From IMG/VR virus record IMGVR_UViG_3300007513_000001, positions 124,001 to 188,000 of that record: a DNA stretch of 64,000 nt; one strand, 5' to 3'. Each line of letters starts with the position of its first letter. Position 1 is the first letter of the stretch. Shown here in pieces: positions 39,199-57,865 of this stretch. The translations under genes were made by a program, and so were the position numbers. Below the pieces are notes generated by a model that saw only the letters and a list, made by a program, of their open reading frames with translations, ran no database searches and was not told the DNA's origin.

Positions 39199-42100
39199 AT
39201 GTCTTTTAAATGTATCCACCTTTCTGATGTTCACTTCCGCGGGTTATCTCGTCACGAAGAATACAGAGAATCTTTTTTAGATTTCTTTGAAAAAGCTAGG
39301 AAAATTAACCCTGATTTAATATTTGTCGGTGGAGATATAGTCCATTCAAAAACACAGGGAATATCTCCAGAGTTAATTGATATTTTATCTTGGTGGTTTG
39401 AAGAATTAGCTAAAGTAGCTCCAACTCATGTTATTCTTGGAAATCACGATGGCTTAATTTCTAACCCACACAGGCAAGATGCTATATCTCCTATAATTTC
39501 AGCCCTTAATAACAGCAATTTGCACTTGTATAAGGATTCTGGAACTTACTCAACTGGCATCCCTGGCTTTAACTGGGGAGTTTTTTCTTGCTTTGATGAA
39601 GAGAATTGGGAAAATGTTAAGCCTGTAGAGGGAGAAGTAAATATTGCTCTGTTTCACGGTGGAGTGCTCGGATCTTTTACGGATATCAATTGGGAAATTG
39701 AGGGTGAAGTAGAGCACACATTCTTTAAAGATTTTGAGTTTGCTTTTCTTGGAGACATCCATAAATTTCAGTTTTTAAATGAGTCTAAAACTATAGCGTA
39801 CCCCGGATCTACTATACAACAAAACTACGGAGAAGATCCTGGAAAAGGATTTTTAGTGTGGGACATAAGATCAGCTGATGATTTTGACGTTGACTTTGTT
39901 GAAGTTTTTCACTCTAAGCCTTTCGCCACTATAGACTGGAAAGACACTGTTGTAGATACCGTTAGGGAATCTAGCAAATATCCAGATGGTTCGAGATTTA
40001 GGATTAGATCGCAATTTCAAATACCCCAAACCGAGATAAAGCATTTATATTCTGAGCTAAAAGAAAAGAAAAAAGCTTCTGAAATAGTTTTTAAATTCGA
40101 CGATATAAAATCTCAAATTATAGAATCATCAACTAACGATGAGTCTTTTTCTAATTTTAGAGACCCTTCAGTTATTTTAGACTTACTAAAGCAATACTAC
40201 AAAGAAGCGTCTATATCTGAAGAAGAATGGCAAGAAATTTCAGTGTTGTTGAAAAAATATACAGGCTCAGTAATAGAAAATGACACCCCCAGAAACGTTA
40301 AATGGTCAATAAAAAAGCTTCAATTTGACAATGTTTTTTCTTATGGAAAAAATAACGTTATCAACTTTGATTCTCTTCACGGCGTGGTGGGTCTTTTCGG
40401 TAAAAATAGATCTGGAAAATCTTCTATTCCAGGATCGATCATGTATGGTCTTTATAACACAACGGATCGAGGATCTATTAAAAATCTTCACGTAATCAAT
40501 ACCCGAAAGGGCCACTGTAAAGTTGAGCTTGATTTTTTAGTAAACGGAGTTTGTCACAGATTGGAGCGCCAATCAGTAAAACACCAAAACCGACGTGGCG
40601 AGATCAATGCTGTCACTCACTTAAACCTCTATCGTGTAGACACCAATGGAGAACTCAAGGATTTATCTGGTGGCCAACGAAGGGAAACTGACGCAATATT
40701 AAGATCTTTAGTTGGAACTTACGAAGACTTTATGTTAACTTCCTTTGCGTCGCAGGGAGGGATAAACACTTTTATAAAGCACCGCGCGACTAAAAGAAAA
40801 GAAATTTTAGCTAGTTTTTTAGATTTGAATATATTCGAAACTATTTTGAACAACGCAAAAGAAGACTCTATTCATATTAAGGCTTTACTAGACAAATCTC
40901 CTGAAAGAGAGTGGAACACTCTTATATTAGAAAAGGGCTTGATTTTAAAAAGTCTAAAAGAAGAGAGGCTGAAAATCGATTCTGATTTAGCTTCTGCAAA
41001 TTCTAAAATTCAAGAAATAAAAGTTGAATCAGCATCTTCTTTTTCTGAAATCATAACAGAAGCTGATTTAACTAAATCAGAAAGCGAGATATCTGAAAAT
41101 AGAGAACGAATTTCTGAGCTAAATTCAGCTGTAGAAACTAACCAGATAACTCTGGACAATCTCGATGCAAAATTAACTAAAATAGATCAACTAAAGAACC
41201 AGTTCCCAATTGATCAATTAAAAGAAAAATATGGAGCTCAACTTGAGCTAGAAAAGACTTTATTGGTTTTGGAGGGTAGTCTAGATCAAGAAAAATCTAC
41301 TTTAAAAAATAAGAGAGACTCTATCTCGCTTTTAGACCAAGTTCCCTGTGGAGATAAGTTTCCAACATGCAAATTTATTAAAAGATCTCATCTCGACAAA
41401 AGTCTAATTGAAGAACAAGTTAATTTAGTAGAAAATATAGAGAAGCAAATCCAATCAGCGAAAAAAGCTTTTTCTATATTGCTTGACGAAGATTTAAAGT
41501 CTAAAATTGATAAATACCAAAACCTTTTAGAAAAAGAGAGTAATTTCAAAATAGAAAGATCTACGTTAGAAGCTAAATCTAGAGAGGCAGAATCTGCAAA
41601 AGATAGAATTTCTTTGCTTATATTAGAATTAGAAAAAGAGTATGAAAGTCTAAAATCTAGAGTGGATATGTCAGATAAATCTGAGAGGATTAATTCTATA
41701 AAAATAGAGCTTATGAAACTCGAAAAAACAGCTAGAGATTTAGACGCTCAAAGAATAAGTACAAGTGAATCTATCGGACTAACGACTTCAGAGCTAGCTA
41801 AGCTAAAAGAAGAAAAAACTAGCTATGAAAATCTATTGATGGAGTGGAGGATATACGAAATTTTGATGAATGGCGTGAACAAAAAGGGCATACCACTTCA
41901 TATTTTGACAATGCAGCTTCCTAAAATCAATAAAGAAATTGCAAAGATACTACATGGAGTTGTAGAGTTTACTGTTGAGCTTGAAGCTGACTTAAAATCA
42001 AATTCTATGGATGTTTTTATAAATTATGGAGACTCAAAGAGAATTATTGAATGCGCTTCAGGCATGGAGAAAATGATATCCTCTATAGCTATTAGAGTGG

Positions 42101-42330
42101 CGTTAGTAAATGTTTCTTCTTTACCAAAGTGCGACACGTTTATAATTGATGAAGGATTCGGAGCTTTAGATGAAACTAACGTCGAAGCTTGTAATAGACT
42201 TCTTCAATCATTGAAAAAATGGTTTAAGAATATTTTAGTTATTTCTCACGTAGATGCTGTGAAAGATAGCGTAGATACTATTTTAGATATATTTTCAAAA
42301 GGTATTGATTCGCAGGTGATTCATGAATAA
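39199..42330 (+). CDS. Fused SbcD/Mre11 nuclease - SbcC/Rad50 ATPase (T4 gp47-gp46-like) in one polypeptide
   Basis: Phosphoesterase motifs SDVH, GGDIVH, GNHD, FHG, LGDIH and YPGS; then Walker A GKNRSGKS, Q-loop FASQG, coiled coil, signature ASGMEK, Walker B/D-loop IIDEGFGALD and H-loop ISH. Confidence 0.92.
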   Translation: MSFKCIHLSDVHFRGLSRHEEYRESFLDFFEKARKINPDLIFVGGDIVHSKTQGISPELIDILSWWFEELAKVAPTHVILGNHDGLISNPHRQDAISPIISALNNSNLHLYKDSGTYSTGIPGFNWGVFSCFDEENWENVKPVEGEVNIALFHGGVLGSFTDINWEIEGEVEHTFFKDFEFAFLGDIHKFQFLNESKTIAYPGSTIQQNYGEDPGKGFLVWDIRSADDFDVDFVEVFHSKPFATIDWKDTVVDTVRESSKYPDGSRFRIRSQFQIPQTEIKHLYSELKEKKKASEIVFKFDDIKSQIIESSTNDESFSNFRDPSVILDLLKQYYKEASISEEEWQEISVLLKKYTGSVIENDTPRNVKWSIKKLQFDNVFSYGKNNVINFDSLHGVVGLFGKNRSGKSSIPGSIMYGLYNTTDRGSIKNLHVINTRKGHCKVELDFLVNGVCHRLERQSVKHQNRRGEINAVTHLNLYRVDTNGELKDLSGGQRRETDAILRSLVGTYEDFMLTSFASQGGINTFIKHRATKRKEILASFLDLNIFETILNNAKEDSIHIKALLDKSPEREWNTLILEKGLILKSLKEERLKIDSDLASANSKIQEIKVESASSFSEIITEADLTKSESEISENRERISELNSAVETNQITLDNLDAKLTKIDQLKNQFPIDQLKEKYGAQLELEKTLLVLEGSLDQEKSTLKNKRDSISLLDQVPCGDKFPTCKFIKRSHLDKSLIEEQVNLVENIEKQIQSAKKAFSILLDEDLKSKIDKYQNLLEKESNFKIERSTLEAKSREAESAKDRISLLILELEKEYESLKSRVDMSDKSERINSIKIELMKLEKTARDLDAQRISTSESIGLTTSELAKLKEEKTSYENLLMEWRIYEILMNGVNKKGIPLHILTMQLPKINKEIAKILHGVVEFTVELEADLKSNSMDVFINYGDSKRIIECASGMEKMISSIAIRVALVNVSSLPKCDTFIIDEGFGALDETNVEACNRLLQSLKKWFKNILVISHVDAVKDSVDTILDIFSKGIDSQVIHE

Positions 42331-46637: not shown

Positions 46638-47477
46638 ATGCCGAAGCATAATAAAAAAAGAAATGTTGGAATTATCTATGAACAACTACTTTCTTCTCTA
46701 TCACGCGCTTTAGTAGAGGGCAAAAATGGAGAAGTTAAAATAGTAAAAGGAATCATTGATAAACACTTCAAGCCTGGAACAGAGCTCTATAAAGAGTTTA
46801 GGCTTTTTCAAGCTATGGTTAAAACAAAGGTGCCTCGAGAGTCTTTAGCTATTAAAATATTAGGAGAGGCAAAAACAGCTTCTGTTAATAGAAATGCAAA
46901 AAAACTCCAAAGAGAAAAATCTATGTTGATAAAAGACATAAATTACAAAATGGGCAATTCTAATTTTTATAACCAGAGAGTCCAAGAATATAAAGAATAC
47001 GCAACCGTTCAAAATCTTTTAAACTTGTGGGAAAAAGGTGAGGCGGGATCGCTACAAGAAGCCATCAGATATGAATCTTTAGTGCAGGACATGCTTCTAA
47101 GAGAAGAAGACCAGCATAATTTCGAAGATGAAAAAACTGAAGATGTAAATAAGCTAACTGTGAAAATAATGTTAGAAAAATTTAATAAAAAATATGATTC
47201 TAGCTTAAATCAAATGCAAACAAAAATAATTAAAGAATACGTTTTTTGTTCTGGAGAAAATTCTTTAAAGAGTTTATTAAACGAAGTAAAAATTGCTGCC
47301 ATGCACGAAATATCCCAAGTTCCAAATTCGCATAGCAATAAGGTCATTTGTGAAAAAGTTAACAAAGTTAAAAATAACATTTCTAGATTAGACGAAAATA
47401 TTCATGATGACGAAAATATTTCTAGATTCTTGTTGCTTTCTAAACTTTCAGAAGAACTTAAGGAGGATTCAGTATGA
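46638..47477 (+). CDS. Hypothetical head-module protein between portal and protease
   Basis: Start moved from 46626 to 46638 (AAGGA SD); N-terminus KHNKKRNVGIIYEQL; helical, Lys/Glu-rich. Confidence 0.65.
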   Translation: MPKHNKKRNVGIIYEQLLSSLSRALVEGKNGEVKIVKGIIDKHFKPGTELYKEFRLFQAMVKTKVPRESLAIKILGEAKTASVNRNAKKLQREKSMLIKDINYKMGNSNFYNQRVQEYKEYATVQNLLNLWEKGEAGSLQEAIRYESLVQDMLLREEDQHNFEDEKTEDVNKLTVKIMLEKFNKKYDSSLNQMQTKIIKEYVFCSGENSLKSLLNEVKIAAMHEISQVPNSHSNKVICEKVNKVKNNISRLDENIHDDENISRFLLLSKLSEELKEDSV

Positions 47478-48085
47478 GCGATTCTAAATTACATTTGCTC
47501 ACGAGTTGGACTCCGTTTGAATATACTGTAGATCAAATTAAAGAATCTAGAGAAAATAACGGCGGAAAAATTTTAATGCGAGGCGTACTTCAAAAGTCTG
47601 ATACGCTTAATCAAAACGGCAGAGTCTATCCTCGCGTTATCTTAGATAGAGAAGTTAGAAACTATCAAAAATTCATAGCAGAAAATCGAGCGCTTGGAGA
47701 GTGCGATCATCCCGACTCTTCAGTTGTCGAACTTAAAAACGTGTCTCACATAGTAAGAGAAGCTTATATGGACGGAGATATATGCTATGGAACTGTAGAG
47801 CTTTTAGATACTCCAGCTGGAAAAATACTCCAGAGTTTAGTCGAATCTGGAGTGACTTTAGGTATATCATCTCGAGGAGTTGGATCTACTAAAAATGAGG
47901 GAGATCACCAAGTAGTTCAAGACGATTTTCAATTAATTTGCTGGGATTTCGTTAGTGAGCCTTCGACTCCAGGAGCTTTTATGATGCGTGAAGGTGTAGA
48001 AGTTAGAAGGTCTGATTTAAATAAGCATTTTAATAAAACAGATAGAATTGATAGAATATTTAACGATATTTTAGATTGGGAGTAA
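47474..48085 (+). CDS. Prohead maturation protease (T4 gp21-like)
   Basis: GVLQKSDTLNQNGRVYP, ALGECDHP, VSHIV, LGISSRGVGS and WDFVSEPSTPGAF. Confidence 0.93.
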   Translation: MSDSKLHLLTSWTPFEYTVDQIKESRENNGGKILMRGVLQKSDTLNQNGRVYPRVILDREVRNYQKFIAENRALGECDHPDSSVVELKNVSHIVREAYMDGDICYGTVELLDTPAGKILQSLVESGVTLGISSRGVGSTKNEGDHQVVQDDFQLICWDFVSEPSTPGAFMMREGVEVRRSDLNKHFNKTDRIDRIFNDILDWE

Positions 48086-49885: not shown

Positions 49886-50470
49886 ATGCCACTAAAAAAT
49901 CATGGCCTCGGTCACCCCGCACCTTATGATCCACGGGATGACCTGGGCTATGGTCGTCTAAAAAGAAAGTTTGATTTATCGCGATCTTTTGTTCAGTATC
50001 CAGAAAAAGACGAAGAGGATATAGAAGCTGAAGAGTTTATAGATGATGATACTTACGAATCTATACTGACTAAAGCTTTAGGCTATGAGCCTTCTGATCC
50101 ATACGCCAAATATGGAAATGATCCGTTTCATTTTGTTGATGGAGCTACAAAAATGTCAGAAAATTCGACATCTAAAGGAATGGTTCCTTTTCCAAAAATG
50201 TATAGAGGAAGGACTGGCTCTGGAACTGGCGGGTCGGGTGCTGCTTTACCACACCCCGGTCCAACTAATACTTTTAGAACAGTTTCTAGACCAACGGGCA
50301 CAAAAAAAGGTTATTCTTCTGCACCAGAGCCAATTGAAATTTTACAAGACTTAAATGGCCCCAACTATTCTTTAGAAGATATTATTTTTGGAGATGAAGA
50401 CTTGGCGCACATAGAAAGACTTCAAAATCAAACTGAAAAAATTCATCAAATTCAAAAATATGGGAAATAA
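49886..50470 (+). CDS. Hypothetical head-module protein
   Basis: 194 aa ORF in the operon before the scaffold gene. Confidence 0.55.
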   Translation: MPLKNHGLGHPAPYDPRDDLGYGRLKRKFDLSRSFVQYPEKDEEDIEAEEFIDDDTYESILTKALGYEPSDPYAKYGNDPFHFVDGATKMSENSTSKGMVPFPKMYRGRTGSGTGGSGAALPHPGPTNTFRTVSRPTGTKKGYSSAPEPIEILQDLNGPNYSLEDIIFGDEDLAHIERLQNQTEKIHQIQKYGK

Positions 50471-50502
50471 TTTGGCTTATAGAATTAAATCTTCGCTTTT
50501 AG

Positions 50503-50514
50503 ATGAATATTTAC
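50503..50514 (+). promoter_or_regulatory. Putative late promoter ATGAATATTTAC
   Basis: Matches TGAATAnTTAY; upstream of the scaffold-MCP unit. Confidence 0.6.
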
Positions 50515-50555
50515 GAATACATAGTGATATTAGTTTCTTCTAAAGAGAGAGGGAA

Positions 50556-52244
50556 ATGAGCAAAAATCTTTATAACGAAGCCATCGCAGAAGCAAAACAA
50601 CTGCGTGACATGGCTGAACAAAACGCAAAAAATAAAATTATTGAAGCCGTTACTCCTAGAATCAGAAGTCTTATTGAACAGCAGCTTATTGATGATGTTG
50701 AAGAAGAATCAGATTTAGTAATAGGGGATGAAGCAGAAGAATCTGCAGAAGAAATGGTAGATTTAGCAATTGAAGAATTGCCAATGGCTGCGCCGGCAGA
50801 AGAGCCACCCCCCGCTGCTCCCACTGTATCGATTACTGTTCAGGGTGATCTAGATATGGATCTTGGCGAGGGTGATGATGACGAAGAAGAAGATCTTATT
50901 TTAAGTCAAGAGTCTTTTTTGCGTTTAGAGAATTTTTTGCATAATGTGTCAAAAACAAAGAATATTTCTGGCCGTGTTGTTTCTTTATCTAGAAAATTCA
51001 ACATGCTAAGAGAAGCGATTGATGGAGTAAATCTTAATAGATGTAGCTCTGTTGAAAAACAAACAGCGATTATATTTTATGGTCGTCTGTTAGAAGAAGT
51101 TATTACTTTATCTAATAATTTAATACTTATGAAAGAGTCCATTGACAATAGACTCGAATTACAATTAACTCAACTAATAAAGGAGATGAGCAAAATGTCT
51201 AGAAGACGTGACGCAGCAGCTTTCAGGAGACTCTTTGAAGAGTTAACAAAGGATGAGAGTCTTGAGGAAGTGGGCATGTTTGAACAAGAAGAAGAAGAAG
51301 TTGACCTCGATGTAGATGTCGAGGAAGACGTAGAAGTCGCAGCTGAACCCGATGTGGAAGCAGCTGAAGACGCAATATTAGATCTTGGGGCCGCACTCGG
51401 TCTCGACGTTGAAGTCGCACCAGCCGAAGAAGAGGTTGAAGTCGAGGAAGATGTCGAAGAAGAAGAAGAAATTACTTTAGAAAGTGATGATTCTGACGAC
51501 GGGGACGGAGAAGATCTTGACGAAGTTTACGAAATTGATGAAGCTGCGCTACGTCGTGAGCTCTTTAAAATGAGAAGACTTCGTGAGCAAGAAGAGGGAA
51601 GAGCTGCCGCAGCCGATCCTGCACTTGCACATGGTGGAGAAGATGAAGGTGACGTTATTGTCGATGTCGACGAAGACGCTCTTCTTAACGCTCTCGCTGA
51701 TGAACTAGGTGATCCTGGAGTTCCTGCACCGCAGGTTGAAGCTTTTATTCGCCGTAGACTCCGCAGAGCAAGCCGCCAGTTAGCTGAATCACAGCGACGT
51801 AATCGTAGAACTCGTGGAACTCGTAGAAACAGAAGAATTTCAGAGTCACGTCGCACCAGAAGAGCTGCTCCAGCCCGTAACACTAAAAGAGCCGTCATGG
51901 CTGAAAGAACTGTTACTAAATTAAAGAAGCAGCTTGCAGAAATGAATCTTTTTAACGCTAAGCTTCTGTTTGCTAATAAGCTCATGCAAAATCGTGGGCT
52001 TTCAACAAAGCAGCAGCGTGTAGTAGTCGAAGCACTCGACAAAGCACGCACAATCAGAGAAGCCAAACTCCTTTATAAGAGTTTGAGTGCATCTCTAAAT
52101 CGGGGTTCCGGTAAGACTCTATCTGAGAGTCGCTCCCGATTGCTCGCATCTTCATCCAAATCAACCCGGTCAGGCGCGCCTGCCAGCAATGGGAATGAGG
52201 TAGATCGTTGGGCTTTACTCGCCGGGTTAACGTCAGACAAATAG
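50556..52244 (+). CDS. Prohead scaffold/core protein
   Basis: Directly upstream of MCP; very acidic, with coiled-coil C-terminus (LAEMNLFNAKLLFANKL) ending RWALLAGL. Confidence 0.75.
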   Translation: MSKNLYNEAIAEAKQLRDMAEQNAKNKIIEAVTPRIRSLIEQQLIDDVEEESDLVIGDEAEESAEEMVDLAIEELPMAAPAEEPPPAAPTVSITVQGDLDMDLGEGDDDEEEDLILSQESFLRLENFLHNVSKTKNISGRVVSLSRKFNMLREAIDGVNLNRCSSVEKQTAIIFYGRLLEEVITLSNNLILMKESIDNRLELQLTQLIKEMSKMSRRRDAAAFRRLFEELTKDESLEEVGMFEQEEEEVDLDVDVEEDVEVAAEPDVEAAEDAILDLGAALGLDVEVAPAEEEVEVEEDVEEEEEITLESDDSDDGDGEDLDEVYEIDEAALRRELFKMRRLREQEEGRAAAADPALAHGGEDEGDVIVDVDEDALLNALADELGDPGVPAPQVEAFIRRRLRRASRQLAESQRRNRRTRGTRRNRRISESRRTRRAAPARNTKRAVMAERTVTKLKKQLAEMNLFNAKLLFANKLMQNRGLSTKQQRVVVEALDKARTIREAKLLYKSLSASLNRGSGKTLSESRSRLLASSSKSTRSGAPASNGNEVDRWALLAGLTSDK

Positions 52245-52268
52245 AATAAACATAAAGGAGAAATTCAA

Positions 52269-54167
52269 ATGTCTAAGAAATTTACACTGAATCAGTTAAC
52301 CGAGGGTATTCGTCAACGTAATGTTGGAACGGGTAACAGAAGGTTAATTGAAAAGTGGTCCCGCACTGGTCTCCTTAGAGGCCTTGAGGGCACCACTCGC
52401 GAAAATATGGCTACGCTGCTTGAAAATCAGGCATCACAGGTCTTACGCGAGGCTAACTCAATTTCCACCGGTGGTGGAAACTTAACTAGTTCTGGAGACC
52501 TCCGCGGTTTTCAAAACATTGCATTCCCAATCGTTCGTAGAGTTTTCGGCGGCCTGGTTGCTAATGAGCTTGTATCTGTACAGCCCATGAGCCTTCCATC
52601 TGGCCTCCTTTTCTATCTTGATTACACCTACGGAACCAACGTTGGTGGTCGCGACGACTCAGGTATCGATGCATCTTACCCATCTGGAAGTTCAATTTAC
52701 AATTCTCCAGTCGGTAAAGGCATACGTTCTGGTTCTCTTGGAATCGGCGGTCAGTATAATCTTGCTGGCTCTGGTTATTCAAGAGTACATAAGATTGCTT
52801 CGAGCGTAACGCTCCTTGCATCTGGCGCCTATATGGGGAATACAACATTCTCAGCTGACGCTATCGATGAAGTAAGACGTATGGTCGCTACTGGTTCTGA
52901 TGGCAAGCTTCTACAGTTCGATGAGCAGATTTGTAGAATTATTGAAGATAACCCCAACGATGCAGGCCTCGGCGTATTCAAGGCTTACTTTGTTGACTTT
53001 AGTTCAGGCAAGTTTAGTAATGCAGACGCCACTATGGTAAAAGACTTTGCTCTTATACCACCTGATGGCACTGCGCCGACTATTCTTTCACCAACCTTGA
53101 AATCTCAGGATATTCAAGCAAGTGGCGATAGAGTGCTTAATGTTCGTAGGCTTAATCAGCTTGGTAAGTGGGATGGAACTTCGTTCACCGCAGATCCGCT
53201 AGTTAGAGCTGGTGATGCTAACGCAGCTATTCTAATGATCGTTTCTGGTACTAAGGGCAGCACGGCCGAGCAGACTTATAGCGTTGACTATGTTCTCAGC
53301 CCAAGTCTTGATGCAGGGTCAGATGGTGATGCTCTTACTATTCCAACCTTTGAGTCTAACTTCGCTACTTCGCCTTCACCAGAGATCCCAGAGATCGACA
53401 TTAAGGTAGAGTCAATCGCAGTTACTGCAGTAACCCGTAAGCTCCGCGCTCGCTGGTCACCAGAACTCGCACAGGACTTGAATGCTTATCACAGTCTTGA
53501 CGCTGAAGTTGAGCTTACTCAGATCCTTTCCGAGCAGATTGCTCTTGAGCTTGATAGAGAGATCCTTAATGATCTACTCACTCAGGCTAAGACGAACTTC
53601 TACTGGTCACGTTCACCAGGCAAGTTCATGAACAAGAGAAATGGTAACCTTGTCACTCCTGGTGGAGCTGGTTCTATTGGTCCAAGCTTCACAGGCACCG
53701 TCCGCGAATGGTATGAGACTCTGGTCGAGACCATTATTGATGTTGCTAATGAGATCCACAGACTTACTCTAAGAGGATCAGCTAACTTCATCGTAGTGTC
53801 ACCCGACATCGCGACTATTCTTGAAGCGTCTGTTCTTTACCGTCCAAGCTACAGCTTAGATGGTGATGGCCAGGTTGGTACTCCAATGAGCATTGGTGCA
53901 GAGAAGATGGGAACCCTTAGTAACCGTTTCACGGTATACAAAGATCCTTACTTCCCACGCAACAAAGTTCTCGTAGGATTCAAGGGCGGAAGCTATCTTG
54001 AGACCGGTTATGTATACGCTCCATACGTACCACTTATTGTCACTCCAACAATCTTCGCTCCAGAGGACTTCACCCCACGTAAGGGTGTTATGACTCGCTA
54101 TGGTAAGAAGATGGTTCGTTCTGACTTCTATGGTACTGTTACAGTTGCAGATCTTAACGTAATCTAA
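52269..54167 (+). CDS. Major capsid protein, copy 1 (T4 gp23-like HK97 fold)
   Basis: FPIVRRVFGGLVANELVSVQPMSLPSGLLFYL, TRKLRARWSPELAQDLNAYHSLDAEVEL, ELDREIL, YAPYVPL and PRKGVMTRYG; strong AAGGAG SD. Confidence 0.95.
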   Translation: MSKKFTLNQLTEGIRQRNVGTGNRRLIEKWSRTGLLRGLEGTTRENMATLLENQASQVLREANSISTGGGNLTSSGDLRGFQNIAFPIVRRVFGGLVANELVSVQPMSLPSGLLFYLDYTYGTNVGGRDDSGIDASYPSGSSIYNSPVGKGIRSGSLGIGGQYNLAGSGYSRVHKIASSVTLLASGAYMGNTTFSADAIDEVRRMVATGSDGKLLQFDEQICRIIEDNPNDAGLGVFKAYFVDFSSGKFSNADATMVKDFALIPPDGTAPTILSPTLKSQDIQASGDRVLNVRRLNQLGKWDGTSFTADPLVRAGDANAAILMIVSGTKGSTAEQTYSVDYVLSPSLDAGSDGDALTIPTFESNFATSPSPEIPEIDIKVESIAVTAVTRKLRARWSPELAQDLNAYHSLDAEVELTQILSEQIALELDREILNDLLTQAKTNFYWSRSPGKFMNKRNGNLVTPGGAGSIGPSFTGTVREWYETLVETIIDVANEIHRLTLRGSANFIVVSPDIATILEASVLYRPSYSLDGDGQVGTPMSIGAEKMGTLSNRFTVYKDPYFPRNKVLVGFKGGSYLETGYVYAPYVPLIVTPTIFAPEDFTPRKGVMTRYGKKMVRSDFYGTVTVADLNVI

Positions 54168-54169
54168 TA

Positions 54170-54237
54170 ATGTTTGATTAATCGAATGGCGGCGTCCTGC
54201 GCATAGCGTCGGGGCGCCGTCTCAGATTAAAAAGCAT
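54170..54237 (+). promoter_or_regulatory. Long imperfect RNA stem-loop between the two capsid genes, no U-tract
   Basis: Core GGCGGCGTCCTGCGC-ATA-GCGT(C)GGGGCGCCGTC (54188-54221) with several G-U pairs, extended by TTAATC/GATTAA and ATGTTT/AAGCAT. Confidence 0.65.
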
Positions 54238-54260
54238 CCATTTAAAAGGAATAAAACAAA

Positions 54261-56150
54261 ATGTCAAAAAAATTTACACTGAATCAGTTAACTGAAGGTA
54301 TTCGCCAACGCAACGTTGGAACGGGTAACAGAAGGTTAATTGAAAAGTGGTCCCGCACTGGTCTCCTTAGGGGATTGGAAGGTACCACTCGCGAAAATAT
54401 GGCGACCTTACTTGAAAACCAAGCATCGCAAGTACTTCGTGAAGCCAACTCAATTTCCACCGGTGGTGGAAACTTAACTTCGTCTGGAGATCTTCGTGGT
54501 TTTCAGAATATCGCATTTCCAATTGTTCGCAGAGTTTTCGGCGGACTAGTTGCTAATGAATTAGTGTCAGTTCAGCCAATGAGCCTTCCGTCTGGATTGC
54601 TTTTTTATCTAGACTACACATATGGAACCTCTGTAGGTGGCCAGTCTGATGGTGATTCTGCTACGTACCCTTCAGGAAGCTCTATTTATAATGCTCCTAC
54701 GGGTAAAGGCGTACGTTCTGGTTCTCTTGGAATCGGTGGCCAGTACAATCTTGCTGGCTCTGGTTATTCAAGAGTCCACCAGTTAGCTAACACTATTACT
54801 CTACTTGCTTCTGGAGCATACCAGGGAACTACTACGTTCTCGGGCGGTGGCACTAGCTATAAACGCATGACCGCTACCGGTTCTGATGGTAAGCTTCTCC
54901 AGTTTGACGAACAGATTTGTAGGCTGATCGAAGATCATCCAAACAGCGAAGGCTTAGGCGTTTTCACTGCTGTTTTTGTAGACCTGAACTCTACTCAGTT
55001 TAGTAATGGTGATCTTTCAATGGTTAAGGATTTCGCTCTTATACCATCGGCATCCGCTATTAACTTTGCAGGTCCCTCGCAGACTCTTAAAGATCAAGAC
55101 GTTCAAATTTCAGGAAACAAGGTTATTAACGTTAGACGACTTAACCAGATTGGTAAATGGGATGGAACTTCATTCACTCACGATCCGTTAACTAAGGCGG
55201 GTGATTCAAACGCTGCAATATTGATGATTATCTCAGGTACAGATTCTTTCTCTGAGGGAATGGATATTGATTATATTTTATCACCAAGCTTAAATGTCGG
55301 CAGTGATGGAGACGCGCTAACGATTCCAACCTTTGAGTCTAACTTCGGTACTACACCTTCACCAGAGATTCCAGAGATTGATATTAAAGTTGAATCTATT
55401 GCGGTTACTGCAGTTACTAGAAAGCTCCGCGCTCGCTGGTCACCAGAGCTTGCTCAAGATCTTAACGCGTATCACTCTTTAGACGCAGAAGTTGAGCTTA
55501 CTCAGATCCTTTCTGAACAAATTGCTCTTGAGTTGGATCGTGAAATTCTTAATGATCTACTCACTCAGGCTAAGACGAACTTCTACTGGTCGCGCTCACC
55601 AGGTAAGTTCATGAACAAGCGGAGTGGCGCTCTAGTTACTCCAGGCGGAGCAGGGAACATTGGTCCAAGCTTCACCGGTACAGTTCGTGAATGGTATGAG
55701 ACTCTAGTTGAGACCATTATTGATGTTGCTAATGAGATTCATAGGCTTACATTACGCGGATCAGCTAACTTCATCGTAGTTTCTCCAGATATTGCAACTA
55801 TCCTCGAAGCTTCAGTTCTGTATAGACCTACTTATAGCTTGGACGGAGACGGCCAAGTCGGAACTCCAATGAGTATTGGAGCCGAACAGGTTGGAACCCT
55901 TAGTAACCGTTTCACGGTATACAAAGATCCTTACTTCCCAAGAAATAAGGTTCTCGTAGGATTCAAGGGCGGAAGCTATCTTGAGACCGGTTATGTATAC
56001 GCACCTTATGTGCCTCTAATCGTTACTCCAACAATCTTCGCTCCAGAGGACTTCACGCCGCGTAAGGGCGTTATGACTCGCTATGGCAAGAAGATGGTTA
56101 GAAGCGATTTTTATGGTACTGTTACGGTTGCAGATCTTAACGTAATCTGA
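54261..56150 (+). CDS. Major capsid protein, copy 2 (T4 gp23-like HK97 fold)
   Basis: First 123 aa identical to copy 1; last 264 aa differ at 6 positions; central ~245 aa insertion is divergent. Confidence 0.95.
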   Translation: MSKKFTLNQLTEGIRQRNVGTGNRRLIEKWSRTGLLRGLEGTTRENMATLLENQASQVLREANSISTGGGNLTSSGDLRGFQNIAFPIVRRVFGGLVANELVSVQPMSLPSGLLFYLDYTYGTSVGGQSDGDSATYPSGSSIYNAPTGKGVRSGSLGIGGQYNLAGSGYSRVHQLANTITLLASGAYQGTTTFSGGGTSYKRMTATGSDGKLLQFDEQICRLIEDHPNSEGLGVFTAVFVDLNSTQFSNGDLSMVKDFALIPSASAINFAGPSQTLKDQDVQISGNKVINVRRLNQIGKWDGTSFTHDPLTKAGDSNAAILMIISGTDSFSEGMDIDYILSPSLNVGSDGDALTIPTFESNFGTTPSPEIPEIDIKVESIAVTAVTRKLRARWSPELAQDLNAYHSLDAEVELTQILSEQIALELDREILNDLLTQAKTNFYWSRSPGKFMNKRSGALVTPGGAGNIGPSFTGTVREWYETLVETIIDVANEIHRLTLRGSANFIVVSPDIATILEASVLYRPTYSLDGDGQVGTPMSIGAEQVGTLSNRFTVYKDPYFPRNKVLVGFKGGSYLETGYVYAPYVPLIVTPTIFAPEDFTPRKGVMTRYGKKMVRSDFYGTVTVADLNVI

Positions 56151-56170
56151 TAACTGTTTAGATAATAGTT

Positions 56171-56205
56171 GGGGCGGCACTTAATGTGCCGCCCCTTTTG
56201 TTTTT
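56171..56205 (+). terminator. Rho-independent terminator
   Basis: GGGGCGGCAC-TTAAT-GTGCCGCCCC perfect 10 bp stem followed by TTTTGTTTTT. Confidence 0.92.
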
Positions 56206-56260
56206 ATTAAACGTTTCTGAGAAAAAAATATAATCTAATCTGAATTTGGAGATTCTTATC

Positions 56261-56539
56261 ATGCCTGAAACTACTAAAACTACGAAACCTCGCACAACTA
56301 GAAAAACAACTGCAAAAAAAGAAACCAACACTGATCTTGATGCAGTAAAAAATGCGTTGGCTCGACTTCAACTTCGCGTTGATACCCTTGAAGCTAAGTG
56401 TGCTAAGTTGGAAAAGGCTAAACCAGTAGCTAATTCAGGCGGCGGACTTTCTGAAGAGAGATGGAGTTCACTTAAGCTATTCTTAGAAAAAAAGTTTGGA
56501 AGAGAGCTCTTGAAAAGCAGTGGTATTTGGTTTAAATAA
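56261..56539 (+). CDS. Small hypothetical protein (Lys/Thr-rich N-terminus, coiled coil)
   Basis: GGAG SD at 56248 favours ATG 56261. Confidence 0.6.
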   Translation: MPETTKTTKPRTTRKTTAKKETNTDLDAVKNALARLQLRVDTLEAKCAKLEKAKPVANSGGGLSEERWSSLKLFLEKKFGRELLKSSGIWFK

Positions 56540-56569
56540 GTTTTTTTGAAAAAAATATAGTCTTAATGA

Positions 56570-56581
56570 ATGAGTATTTAT
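56570..56581 (+). promoter_or_regulatory. Putative late promoter ATGAGTATTTAT
   Basis: One mismatch to ATGAATATTTAT; upstream of the neck genes. A second candidate ATAGTTAG lies at 56649. Confidence 0.45.
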
Positions 56582-56677
56582 GTGATTAATTACACGTAGA
56601 AATTTGTTAGGGCAACAATCTAGCTCGGTAATTATGAACTTTAACTTAATAGTTAGTCATAGTTGCCGAGTTTTTTT

Positions 56678-57865
56678 ATGTCAAAATTTTTTCAAACATT
56701 AAATCCAACGCCTTTTGGCTTTTTTGACGACGATTTAGATTTTCAAAAAGAAGCTGATTCTATGATCACGTATGTTAAAAGAAAGCTAGGCGACGATATT
56801 TTAAGTGTAGAGTTAACTAAAAAACAAATATGGGCGTGTTTGGAAGAATCAACATTAGAGTATGGCTCTTTAGTAAACGAATTTCAAACTAAATCGCAGC
56901 TTAGTAACGTTTTAGGGGCTTCTACAGGTTCTAATATTCAGGGTAAATATGCTCATGAAACTCTTGATTTCATCCTTAGATTAGCTGAGCCTTATGCTCA
57001 AGATGCAGGGATTGGAGGGTCTTATAATACGCTGTCTGGATCTATTAAATTGGAATCTGGACGTCAAGATTATGATATTTACAGCGAACTAAAAGACGAT
57101 TCAGGAAATTTAATTTTTTCTTCTAGTTTGAACAATAATGGTTCTGGAAAAATGAAAATACTAGAAGTTTTCCACTTCAGTCCCCAAGCAGCCTATAGAT
57201 TCTTTGATACAACTTCAGCAATAAATTATCTCAATAACGAATTTTCTTTTGAGTCATTTACTCCAGAGACAGTGTTTTATGTTCTTCCAGTTTTCGAAGA
57301 CGTCCTCCGCGGAGGTCAAATGAGCTTATCTAATCGAGTAAGAAGATCTAACTACTCTTTCAGGACTCAGGGAACGAAAATAAGAATTTTTCCATCTCCA
57401 ACTTTTAATGATGGAAATAGTGTGGCTGAAAAAAATAGAAAGCTTTGGATAAGAGTTGGGTTTGGGAGCGATCCATTTAACCCAGCTTATAATGACGGAA
57501 CCATAAATGGTGTAAGCGATTTTTCTAACATTCCATACGATAATATAAAATTTGAAAATATTAACAGTATGGGTCGACAGTGGATTAGAGAGTTTTGTTT
57601 AGCTTCTTCTAAAGAGCTGCTTGGTTTAGTTCGCAGTAAATTCTCTTCAGTTCCTATACCAGGTGGAGATTTGCAATTAGATGGGTCTAATTTAGTCTCT
57701 CAGGGCAGGGAAGACCAAGAGAAACTAAGAACCTCAATGAAAGAACTGCTAGATAGTCTGACTTACGATAAGATGCTAGAGGGCGAAGCTGGAAAAGCTG
57801 GAAACTTACAAACTGTCTTAAAGACAATACCCATCCCTATGGGTAAATGCATTATAATTGGATGA
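56678..57865 (+). CDS. Neck / head-completion protein (T4 gp13-like)
   Basis: YVKRKLGDDILSVELTKKQI N-terminus and WIREFCLASSKELLGLVRSKFSSVPIPGGDLQLDG C-terminus; ATG 56678 preferred to TTG 56663. Confidence 0.8.
   Translation: MSKFFQTLNPTPFGFFDDDLDFQKEADSMITYVKRKLGDDILSVELTKKQIWACLEESTLEYGSLVNEFQTKSQLSNVLGASTGSNIQGKYAHETLDFILRLAEPYAQDAGIGGSYNTLSGSIKLESGRQDYDIYSELKDDSGNLIFSSSLNNNGSGKMKILEVFHFSPQAAYRFFDTTSAINYLNNEFSFESFTPETVFYVLPVFEDVLRGGQMSLSNRVRRSNYSFRTQGTKIRIFPSPTFNDGNSVAEKNRKLWIRVGFGSDPFNPAYNDGTINGVSDFSNIPYDNIKFENINSMGRQWIREFCLASSKELLGLVRSKFSSVPIPGGDLQLDGSNLVSQGREDQEKLRTSMKELLDSLTYDKMLEGEAGKAGNLQTVLKTIPIPMGKCIIIG

Follow-up and report, generated by a model that had tools for sequence, protein, structure and literature searches.

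Two adjacent genes for gp23-type major capsid proteins (MCPs), copies A and B, were analysed in a stretch of viral DNA of 64,000 nucleotides (nt), referred to as the window, which comprises bases 124001-188000 of the 293,409-bp virus record IMGVR_UViG_3300007513_000001 (IMG/VR), a record with direct terminal repeats; the coordinates given below are window positions unless another sequence is named. In this gene pair, old synonymous divergence appears to have been overwritten by recent short gene-conversion patches, with purifying selection acting on a shared protein core; a probability of about 0.75 is given to this reading. Short-tract gene conversion, as proposed in a preliminary description of the locus, is supported by a clustering of synonymous differences that is found only within genomes, by Sawyer-type tests (p <= 0.0006), by a lack of constraint on the identical tracts in a sister phage and by a core protein tree in which the copies group by genome. 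The source is an uncultured, marine, T4-like jumbo phage of 293 kb, and the runs holding the window stretch are marine or seawater metagenomes.

Proteins and codons of the two copies

The tandem and its variable domain are located as follows:

52269-54167, + strand: MCP copy A, gp23-type major capsid protein, open reading frame (ORF) of 632 amino acids (aa)
54261-56150, + strand: MCP copy B, gp23-type major capsid protein, ORF of 629 aa, in tandem with A
52638-53312, + strand: residues 124-348 of A, the variable middle (insertion) domain, corresponding to 54630-55295 (residues 124-345) in B

The two genes had been described as encoding the same protein by different DNA. For the proteins, this is correct over the core but not over the middle: 550 of 634 columns of the A/B alignment are identical, residues 1-123 being 100 % identical and the last 284 residues differing at nine sites (core 9/407 differences, about 98 % identical), whereas residues from about 124 to 348 are 69 % identical. 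This middle domain of about 225 aa holds all but nine of the A/B amino-acid differences; it is the least conserved part across 49 relatives too, and stands in for about 50 positions of the Pfam Gp23 profile. That the DNA differs where the proteins are identical was borne out by 232 codons for identical amino acids that differ synonymously. The nucleotide identity of A and B is 77 %, and about 40 % of the degenerate core codons differ. The codon-family switches were found as quoted (Ser AGT/TCG at codon 74; CGT TCT vs AGA AGC at codons 619-620); in total, six Ser (AGY vs TCN), nine Arg and 15 Leu switches separate A and B.

A sister phage, L094 (a 242-kb contig retrieved via the middle domain of B), carries a tandem of its own, A2 at 678-2588 and B2 at 2650-4533 of L094. 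In the core, the synonymous distance (dS) of A and B is about 1 overall, and A2-B2 is saturated (proportion of synonymous differences, pS, 0.75); the non-synonymous distance (dN) is about 0.03, a part of which comes from Ser/Arg/Leu family switches that are counted as non-synonymous paths. The strong purifying selection that had been postulated is supported by a core dN/dS of 0.007-0.04 (middle domain 0.06-0.21) and by a core amino-acid identity of 0.978, the highest among 587 pairs with 33-48 % synonymous codon difference; the next value among these pairs is 0.956, and a typical one about 0.83. B-type middle domains of three lineages have a dN/dS of 0.06-0.11, and because they are conserved among these lineages, B is a maintained gene.

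Identical tracts and clustering of differences

Four identical tracts of 56, 53, 48 and 44 nt are exact as originally listed:

52323-52378 (= 54315-54370), + strand: identical tract 1, 56 nt, A-type sequence; A2 and B2 differ at 14/56
53565-53608 (= 55548-55591), + strand: identical tract 2, 44 nt; A2 and B2 differ at 7/44
53910-53957 (= 55893-55940), + strand: identical tract 3, 48 nt; A2 and B2 differ at 11/48
53967-54019 (= 55950-56002), + strand: identical tract 4, 53 nt, B-type sequence

Tract 1 has six mismatches to A2 and 14 to B2, which suggests a conversion from A to B; tract 4, with 11 mismatches to A2 and four to B2, suggests a conversion from B to A.

Chance expectations were obtained by shuffling codon states within each amino-acid class. 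In the C-terminal core, 76 codon-state runs were counted against 136 +/- 8 expected (p < 5e-5), and in the N-terminal core 45 against 60 (p = 0.003); four tracts of at least 40 nt were seen where 0.1 were expected. Sliding windows of seven degenerate codons were bimodal, 64 of them containing no difference (10 expected) and 34 containing six or seven (8 expected). As an empirical control, 120 ortholog pairs of similar synonymous divergence were taken from related phages. The clustering z score of the core was -7.45 for A-B, and the control pairs had a mean of -1.22 (standard deviation 0.98, minimum -3.61). A random placement of the synonymous differences, with tract lengths as expected by chance, is ruled out by the shuffling and by the z scores of the ortholog pairs. 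Among the ten pairs formed by five dual-copy sequences, A-B (-7.9) and A2-B2 (-3.7) were the two most extreme. In a Sawyer-type test on 760 polymorphic sites, the maximum run for A-B was 17 against 7.9 under the null (p = 0.0006), and the sum of the top four runs 60 against 26 (p = 0.0002); A2-B2 gave a maximum run of 14 (p = 0.0006). Ortholog pairs gave p > 0.1, and the only other pair below 0.05 was B-A2 (0.0096). The patchwork signal is specific to within-genome pairs. It is not significant in the middle domain (clustering z -0.7), and the tracts shared by A and B were not enriched at amino-acid positions that are variable among orthologs (0.871 vs 0.862).

The tracts might alternatively be kept by RNA structure, regulatory signals or position-specific codon preference. 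Constraint of this kind at the nucleotide level is very unlikely, although orthologs, too, share some exact runs of 30-53 nt in their C-terminal part (53 nt for A-L007), tracts of at least 20 nt have a somewhat lower A2-B2 distance (0.155 vs 0.236), and ortholog pairs are mildly clustered (mean z -1.2). Over the 65 codons of the four long tracts, the proportion of degenerate codons that differ between A2 and B2 is 55 %, against 57 % outside; in bases, the difference within the tracts amounts to 43/201 nt (21 %). For A and A2, the proportion of differing codons in the tracts is 46 %. A2 and B2 share no identical tract of at least 30 nt. The codon entropy is equal at codons identical and at codons different between A and B within each amino acid (63 non-redundant orthologs), no Rfam match was obtained in 50400-56800, and no ortholog pair nears a z of -7.5. 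Because A2 and B2 differ in the tracts as they do elsewhere, and because the codon entropy of the orthologs is equal, the tracts are young and lineage-specific, and not conserved elements.

Relatives and age of the duplication

With copy A as query, 80 loci were retrieved; the middle domain of B was used as a second query. Among the 80 loci, two copies were present only in near-identical contigs, and in 48 related loci (<= 75 % identity, >= 1.5 kb downstream) a single copy was present, with a variable slot separating it from the neck gene. No second Gp23-family gene was found in the larger single-copy relative records (175-318 kb, one of them 93 % complete). Via the middle domain of B, a third lineage, L093, was found in addition to L094; in L093, a B-type copy (B3) is preceded by the end of another copy. 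The middle domains are 74 % identical for A-A2, 76 % for B-B2, 77 % for B-B3 and 69 % for A-B, and the B types form a clade in the middle-domain tree (99 % by SH-aLRT, the Shimodaira-Hasegawa-like approximate likelihood ratio test). All five dual-copy sequences form one clade (98 %) among single-copy relatives.

In the core protein tree, A2 and B2 are joined (92 %), and the branches of A and B are near zero. Informative amino-acid sites of the core support grouping by genome at six sites, by orthology at none and otherwise at one; in the middle domain, 12 sites are in accord with orthology, three with genome and two with neither. By these trees and site patterns, the middle domain follows orthology and the core groups by genome. 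Since the A and B middle domains are orthologous and the tandem is shared, the duplication predates the split of the window phage, L094 and L093; since the dual-copy clade is nested among single-copy relatives, it postdates the split from those that were sampled. The old duplication assumed in the preliminary description is thus confirmed by the pair in L094 and L093, by the orthology of the middle domains and by the single copy in 48 relatives.

In the core, amino-acid patterns are more genome-concordant than nucleotide patterns (6:0:1; Fisher p = 0.005, from small numbers). The core sites would fit parallel replacement with both cores kept matched, as expected for a shared lattice, scaffold and protease, and the differently encoded shared residues point to selection-driven parallel replacement or to micro-conversion of 1-2 nt.

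The paralogs of L094 share a 26-nt stretch (693-718 of the five-sequence alignment) with 14 concordant polymorphic sites inside the diverged middle domain, which suggests an independent conversion event in that domain. The slot between the capsid and neck genes measures about 0.15 kb to 4.7 kb in the single-copy relatives (loci L007-L081) and is a cargo hotspot; in the window phage it holds copy B and a 97-aa ORF.

This slot bears on a further possibility, namely that B was acquired from another phage as a diverged allele that entered the variable position behind the capsid gene, the mosaic arising from later exchange with A or with outside alleles. The variability of the slot (0.15 to 4.7 kb) and the closer similarity of A-A2 than of B-B2 would be in keeping with such an origin. 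It is nevertheless rated as highly improbable: in both the middle-domain and the core trees, A and B types are one clade (98 %) nested among single-copy relatives, and none of the single-copy relatives found has a B-type middle domain. When outside donors were searched for in the orthologs, the divergent patches of B gave no long exact matches; for the divergent patches in general, the one exception is the 53-nt run of A and L007.

Assemblies, contigs and strain variants

The population evidence consisted of IMG/VR assemblies and of Logan contigs (k = 31) from four runs of two studies, that is, of contigs and not of raw reads. Over the pair, three independent assemblies from other samples (L087, L091 and L092) are 100 % identical to the window, and L095, also from another sample, is identical to it across copy A. 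Logan contigs of the four runs end exactly 30 nt into the tracts (at 52352, 53939, 54344, 55577 and 55922), and the ends at 53939 and 55922, both in tract 3, occur in three runs. At k = 31, end points of this kind require that the two copies have 31 or more bases in common in the reads. Other Logan contigs bridge the end of A, the spacer and the start of B. The tandem and its tracts are features of the reads and not of any single assembler, and a simple assembly duplication, already doubted at the outset, is contradicted by the presence of the tandem in several independent assemblies and by the bridging contigs.

Strain variants were found at two patches:

54737-54746, + strand: patch of three A/B differences in B (sites 54737, 54740 and 54746), A version in L003/L004
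54020-54041, + strand: patch of eight consecutive synonymous A/B differences, B version inside A in L005/L088 and one Logan contig

The L003/L004 strain differs from the window at seven sites within the pair and at further sites outside it. In its patch, all three paralog differences are switched, with identical flanks of 25 and 29 nt; this patch is hard to produce by path switching at k >= 31. At 54020-54041, all eight of the eight paralog differences are switched, with flanks of 53 and 32 nt identical, which would give an identity of 107 nt. The strain patches resemble conversion tracts, with lengths of 10-64 nt in L003/L004 and 22-107 nt in L005/L088. The L003 variants at 53189 and 53867 match the paralog as well, but their maximal tracts measure 6-8 nt and they are better regarded as ordinary transitions. 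No joint of an A/B deletion of roughly 1.99 kb was present in the Logan contigs, though contigs drop rare forms. In run X1, one Logan contig joins 53548 to 53943 and skips 394 nt inside A, with 21 nt on one side; this joint does not represent an A/B hybrid and probably arose as an artefact of the assembly graph.

Several observations weigh against conversion as the explanation. Some contigs mix the copies: X1 has a contig of A context with a B patch and no contig over B at 55986-56146, and the X2 and X3 contigs show the reverse mixing at 55941-55949. Assembly L006 (IMGVR_UViG_3300009128_001297, 2102 bp) has the same chimeric B-then-A sequence at both ends, with an overlap of about 119 nt, and is clearly a collapsed, circular-looking assembly of one repeat unit. 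The patch at 54020-54041 could be due to a path switch of the assembler, and patch variants in general may stem from bubble-popping or path switches, although ongoing conversion would fit them as well. Only three dual-copy lineages were found. The nucleotide site patterns of the C-terminal core are near star-like (28, 23, 22), and phylogenetic resolution is limited because the synonymous sites of the core are saturated. At Ser24 of L094, A2 has AGT and B2 has TCT; at site 462, the first base follows genome (Val vs Ile) and the third follows orthology (C in A/A2, T in B/B2). The states at Ser24 and site 462 are not simple conversion footprints.

The contig mixing and the chimeric ends of L006 could mean that the copies differ at scattered sites, and that bubble-popping or path switching made the tracts or the tandem; nearly all between-assembly variants make A equal to B, in line with such an artefact. 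It is considered improbable all the same, given that the window version recurs unchanged in L087, L091 and L092 and, across A, in L095, that k = 31 contigs of four runs stop 30 nt into the long tracts and others bridge from A through the spacer to B, and that the window has the most differences of all assemblies. The L094 assembly, furthermore, has the tandem without any tract of at least 30 nt, so assembling such a pair does not by itself make tracts.

Codon usage and expression of A and B

At codons that differ between A and B, orthologous capsid genes use the codon of A more often than that of B (0.42 vs 0.28, p = 3e-5). The codon usage of A is typical of the capsid family; the codons of B are closer to the average of the genome, with more A and less C in third position. 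Outside the tracts, the distances are 0.154 for A-A2 and 0.238 for B-B2. The synonymous sites of B evolve faster than those of A.

Two signals in the flanks of B may bear on its expression:

54170-54236, + strand: stem-loop rich in GC and lacking a following T-run, in the 93-nt A/B spacer; folding energy -37.4 kcal/mol (z -6.3)
56171-56205, + strand: intrinsic terminator after B, a stem of 10 GC-rich base pairs followed by a T-run

The start codon is preceded by AAGGAG in A and by AAGGAA in B. In L094, A2 is followed by a comparable hairpin that likewise has no T-run, and the stem-loop of the spacer is likely to be an attenuator or an RNA-end stabiliser that would let some transcription run on into B. 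The terminator hairpin with its T-rich motif is common to the regions after B and after B2 in L094. In the L003/L004 strain, three changes to G (T>G, C>G and T>G at 56181, 56189 and 56196, spanning 16 nt) lie in or just after the terminator. A scan for sigma-70 promoters gave fewer sites than were present in shuffles. Given the codon usage, the sequences before the start codons, the hairpin and the terminator, A would be expressed more strongly than B, and transcription of B would depend on read-through.

The codon asymmetry also has to be weighed under a scenario of recent duplication with selected, rapid synonymous recoding against homologous deletion, mostly in B. The atypical codons of B, the faster silent evolution of B lineages and the short longest identities (56 nt here and under 30 nt in L094) would agree with it, as would the readiness of T4-type phages to recombine and rearrange, with frequent recombination-driven amplification and deletion (10.1101/2022.04.14.488369). 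This scenario, too, has little probability, if slightly more than an assembly artefact. The pair is older than the divergence from L094 and L093 and has orthologous middle domains, and the changes in B are toward genome-average codon usage, as relaxed codon selection predicts. Moreover, selection for evenly broken homology would lead to even spacing, whereas the differences are clustered, which is what conversion produces.

Proposed course of events

For the preferred reading, purifying selection with short gene conversion, the following course is proposed. A gp23-type gene would have been duplicated in tandem in an ancestor that the window phage shares with two or more related lineages, the duplicated unit extending from the ribosome-binding site through the 3' hairpin. 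Both copies would have been kept, the N-terminal 123 and C-terminal 284 residues (which include the capsid-fold core) being held by strong purifying selection and the middle insertion domain of about 225 aa diverging into two types, A and B. Silent sites of the core would have drifted to near saturation, faster in B. Short, homology-dependent conversions of about 20-60 nt in both directions would then have recently re-homogenised about one quarter of the core, presumably driven by the RecA/UvsX and Mre11-Rad50 machinery of the phage, and the outcome would be identical tracts that alternate with densely recoded patches. One candidate component is encoded in the window:

39199-42330, + strand: Mre11/Rad50-like fusion protein, 1043 aa; Pfam Metallophos and SMC_N/SbcC in one ORF

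This ORF looks like a fusion of Mre11-type phosphoesterase and Rad50/SbcC-type ATPase parts; in T4, the counterparts are two proteins, gp47 and gp46. A gene for a RecA/UvsX-family recombinase is present elsewhere in the genome. It is plausible that the silent divergence helps to protect the tandem from deletion, as the preliminary description had suggested. Recombination in T4 falls off below roughly 50 bp of homology, which is near the length of the longest tract seen.

A and B would co-assemble on one scaffold into one shell and differ on its outer surface. That they do so, and that this physical coupling forces the cores into lockstep at the protein level even in stretches of DNA that are not homogenised, is a tentative idea to which we give rather less than even odds. 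If it is true, two alternative surface domains would be carried on one lattice, for example for varied decoration, adhesion or recognition by capsid-sensing host defence, and short-tract conversion would keep the lattice-forming parts matched. No fewer than three lineages of marine jumbo phages have kept the pair, in which a near-identical core is combined with two middle domains that are distinct and conserved; the pair suggests capsids with two surface variants. Within a single 4-kb locus, purifying selection, relaxed codon selection on one copy and very short conversion tracts can be separated, and the locus allows both the length and the direction of conversion tracts to be read in a T4-like phage that is uncultured. 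Such pairs will mislead surveys of capsid-gene (g23) diversity and can yield chimeric metagenome contigs, as seen here in L006.

Gene assignment and the head module

Against Pfam Gp23 (PF07068), A and B scored 253 and 254 bits (curated cut-off 24.4), with E values of 7.8e-75 for A and about 1e-75 for both copies; both match phrog_138 (PHROG 138, major head protein) at E 1e-70. The A/B family profile matched T4 gp23 structures (PDB chains) at E about 1e-35 and the gp24 vertex protein at 1e-3. By the family model and by their position in the head module, A and B are assigned as T4 Gp23-type major capsid proteins (PF07068). Cultured phages, Flavobacterium phage immuto among them, reach no more than about 47 % identity to these capsid proteins, and A and B are the sole Gp23-family genes found in their own genome.

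The pair sits inside a T4-like head and neck module. Genes for the large terminase, Portal_T4, a prohead protease and an acidic 562-aa protein lie upstream, and those for a neck-adaptor-like protein, a gp15-like protein and the tail sheath lie downstream. Two of the upstream genes are specified here:

47474-48085, + strand: prohead protease (T4 gp21 type), Pfam Peptidase_S77 at E 5e-24
50556-52244, + strand: acidic, repeat-rich protein of 562 aa, ORF directly upstream of A; presumed scaffold, role from position (gp22-like)

L-x-E motifs occur at residues 38-61 in both A and B; with the protease gene, they bear on a possible removal of an N-terminal propeptide by the prohead protease. The 562-aa protein had no match in Pfam or PHROG; relatives carry it in synteny at 30-58 % identity, and it presumably serves as the scaffold. 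Its gene (50556-52244) contains degenerate GAA/GAT-rich direct repeats of families D5-D9. The most GC-rich part of the window is 52001-56000 (0.44-0.47 vs about 0.36-0.42 around it), and the capsid genes have a GC skew near zero within a region of positive skew; GC-rich, low-skew capsid genes fit the distinct codon usage of highly expressed genes.

An AlphaFold2 model from a 54-sequence alignment was poor (pLDDT, the predicted local distance difference test score, 58.6). A Foldseek search of the PDB with this poor model gave no match at E <= 0.001. VIA-align gave weak capsid matches at residues from about 390 to 632 (Z 6.3 for phage S6 and 4.8 for T4 gp23) and nothing clear for the middle domain.

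Comparison with known systems

A tailed phage typically makes its shell from a single major capsid protein, to which a vertex paralog of greatly diverged sequence is added in some cases. In T4, gene g24, which encodes such a vertex paralog, lies directly downstream of g23. The locus described here resembles T4 gp23/gp24 in having adjacent capsid genes of the gp23 family, presumably HK97-type in A and B, in a T4-like head module, and the Pfam Gp23 model covers both T4 proteins. The T4 paralogs, however, are old, highly diverged and separate in role, whereas the cores of A and B are about 98 % identical and both proteins are gp23-like. A role of B as a gp24-type vertex (penton) paralog is not supported, considering the profile matches (gp23 1e-35 vs gp24 1e-3) and the 9/407 core differences; nor is a penton role needed, relatives with a single Gp23-family gene being available in records of 175-318 kb. 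One point would fit a minor-copy role of B, namely its codon usage nearer to the genome average.

A different arrangement is known from Mycobacterium phage Jabs, in which MCPh and MCPp, encoded by adjacent genes, are the hexon and penton of one HK97-type shell (bioRxiv 10.64898/2026.07.24.740622). The Jabs proteins, at 594 and 257 aa, are very unequal in length and their locations are proven; the proteins described here measure 632 and 629 aa. A literature search of incomplete coverage returned hexon/penton pairs and general work on gene conversion but no capsid twins with near-identical cores in tailed phages.

Two near-identical repeats with patterned differences in a phage structural region are also reminiscent of diversity-generating retroelements. 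Such an element was rejected here: the A/B differences are not adenine-specific (row totals A 100, C 126, G 78 and T 121) and, unlike those of retroelement pairs, are mostly synonymous and span 1.9 kb.

The closest likeness is to the concerted evolution of duplicates such as bacterial rRNA operons and globins, for which examples of gene conversion have been described (PMC8022953, PMC6209878): runs of identity within a genome are absent from orthologs, some regions escape conversion and keep to orthology, and the statistical signature of Sawyer-type runs is shared. Unlike in the rRNA and globin cases, the tracts measure 20-60 nt on a near-saturated silent background, the gene is a structural gene of a virus, and the protein is identical where the DNA is not. 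The process itself is ordinary concerted evolution by gene conversion, which is already known; its twin-capsid setting is uncommon.

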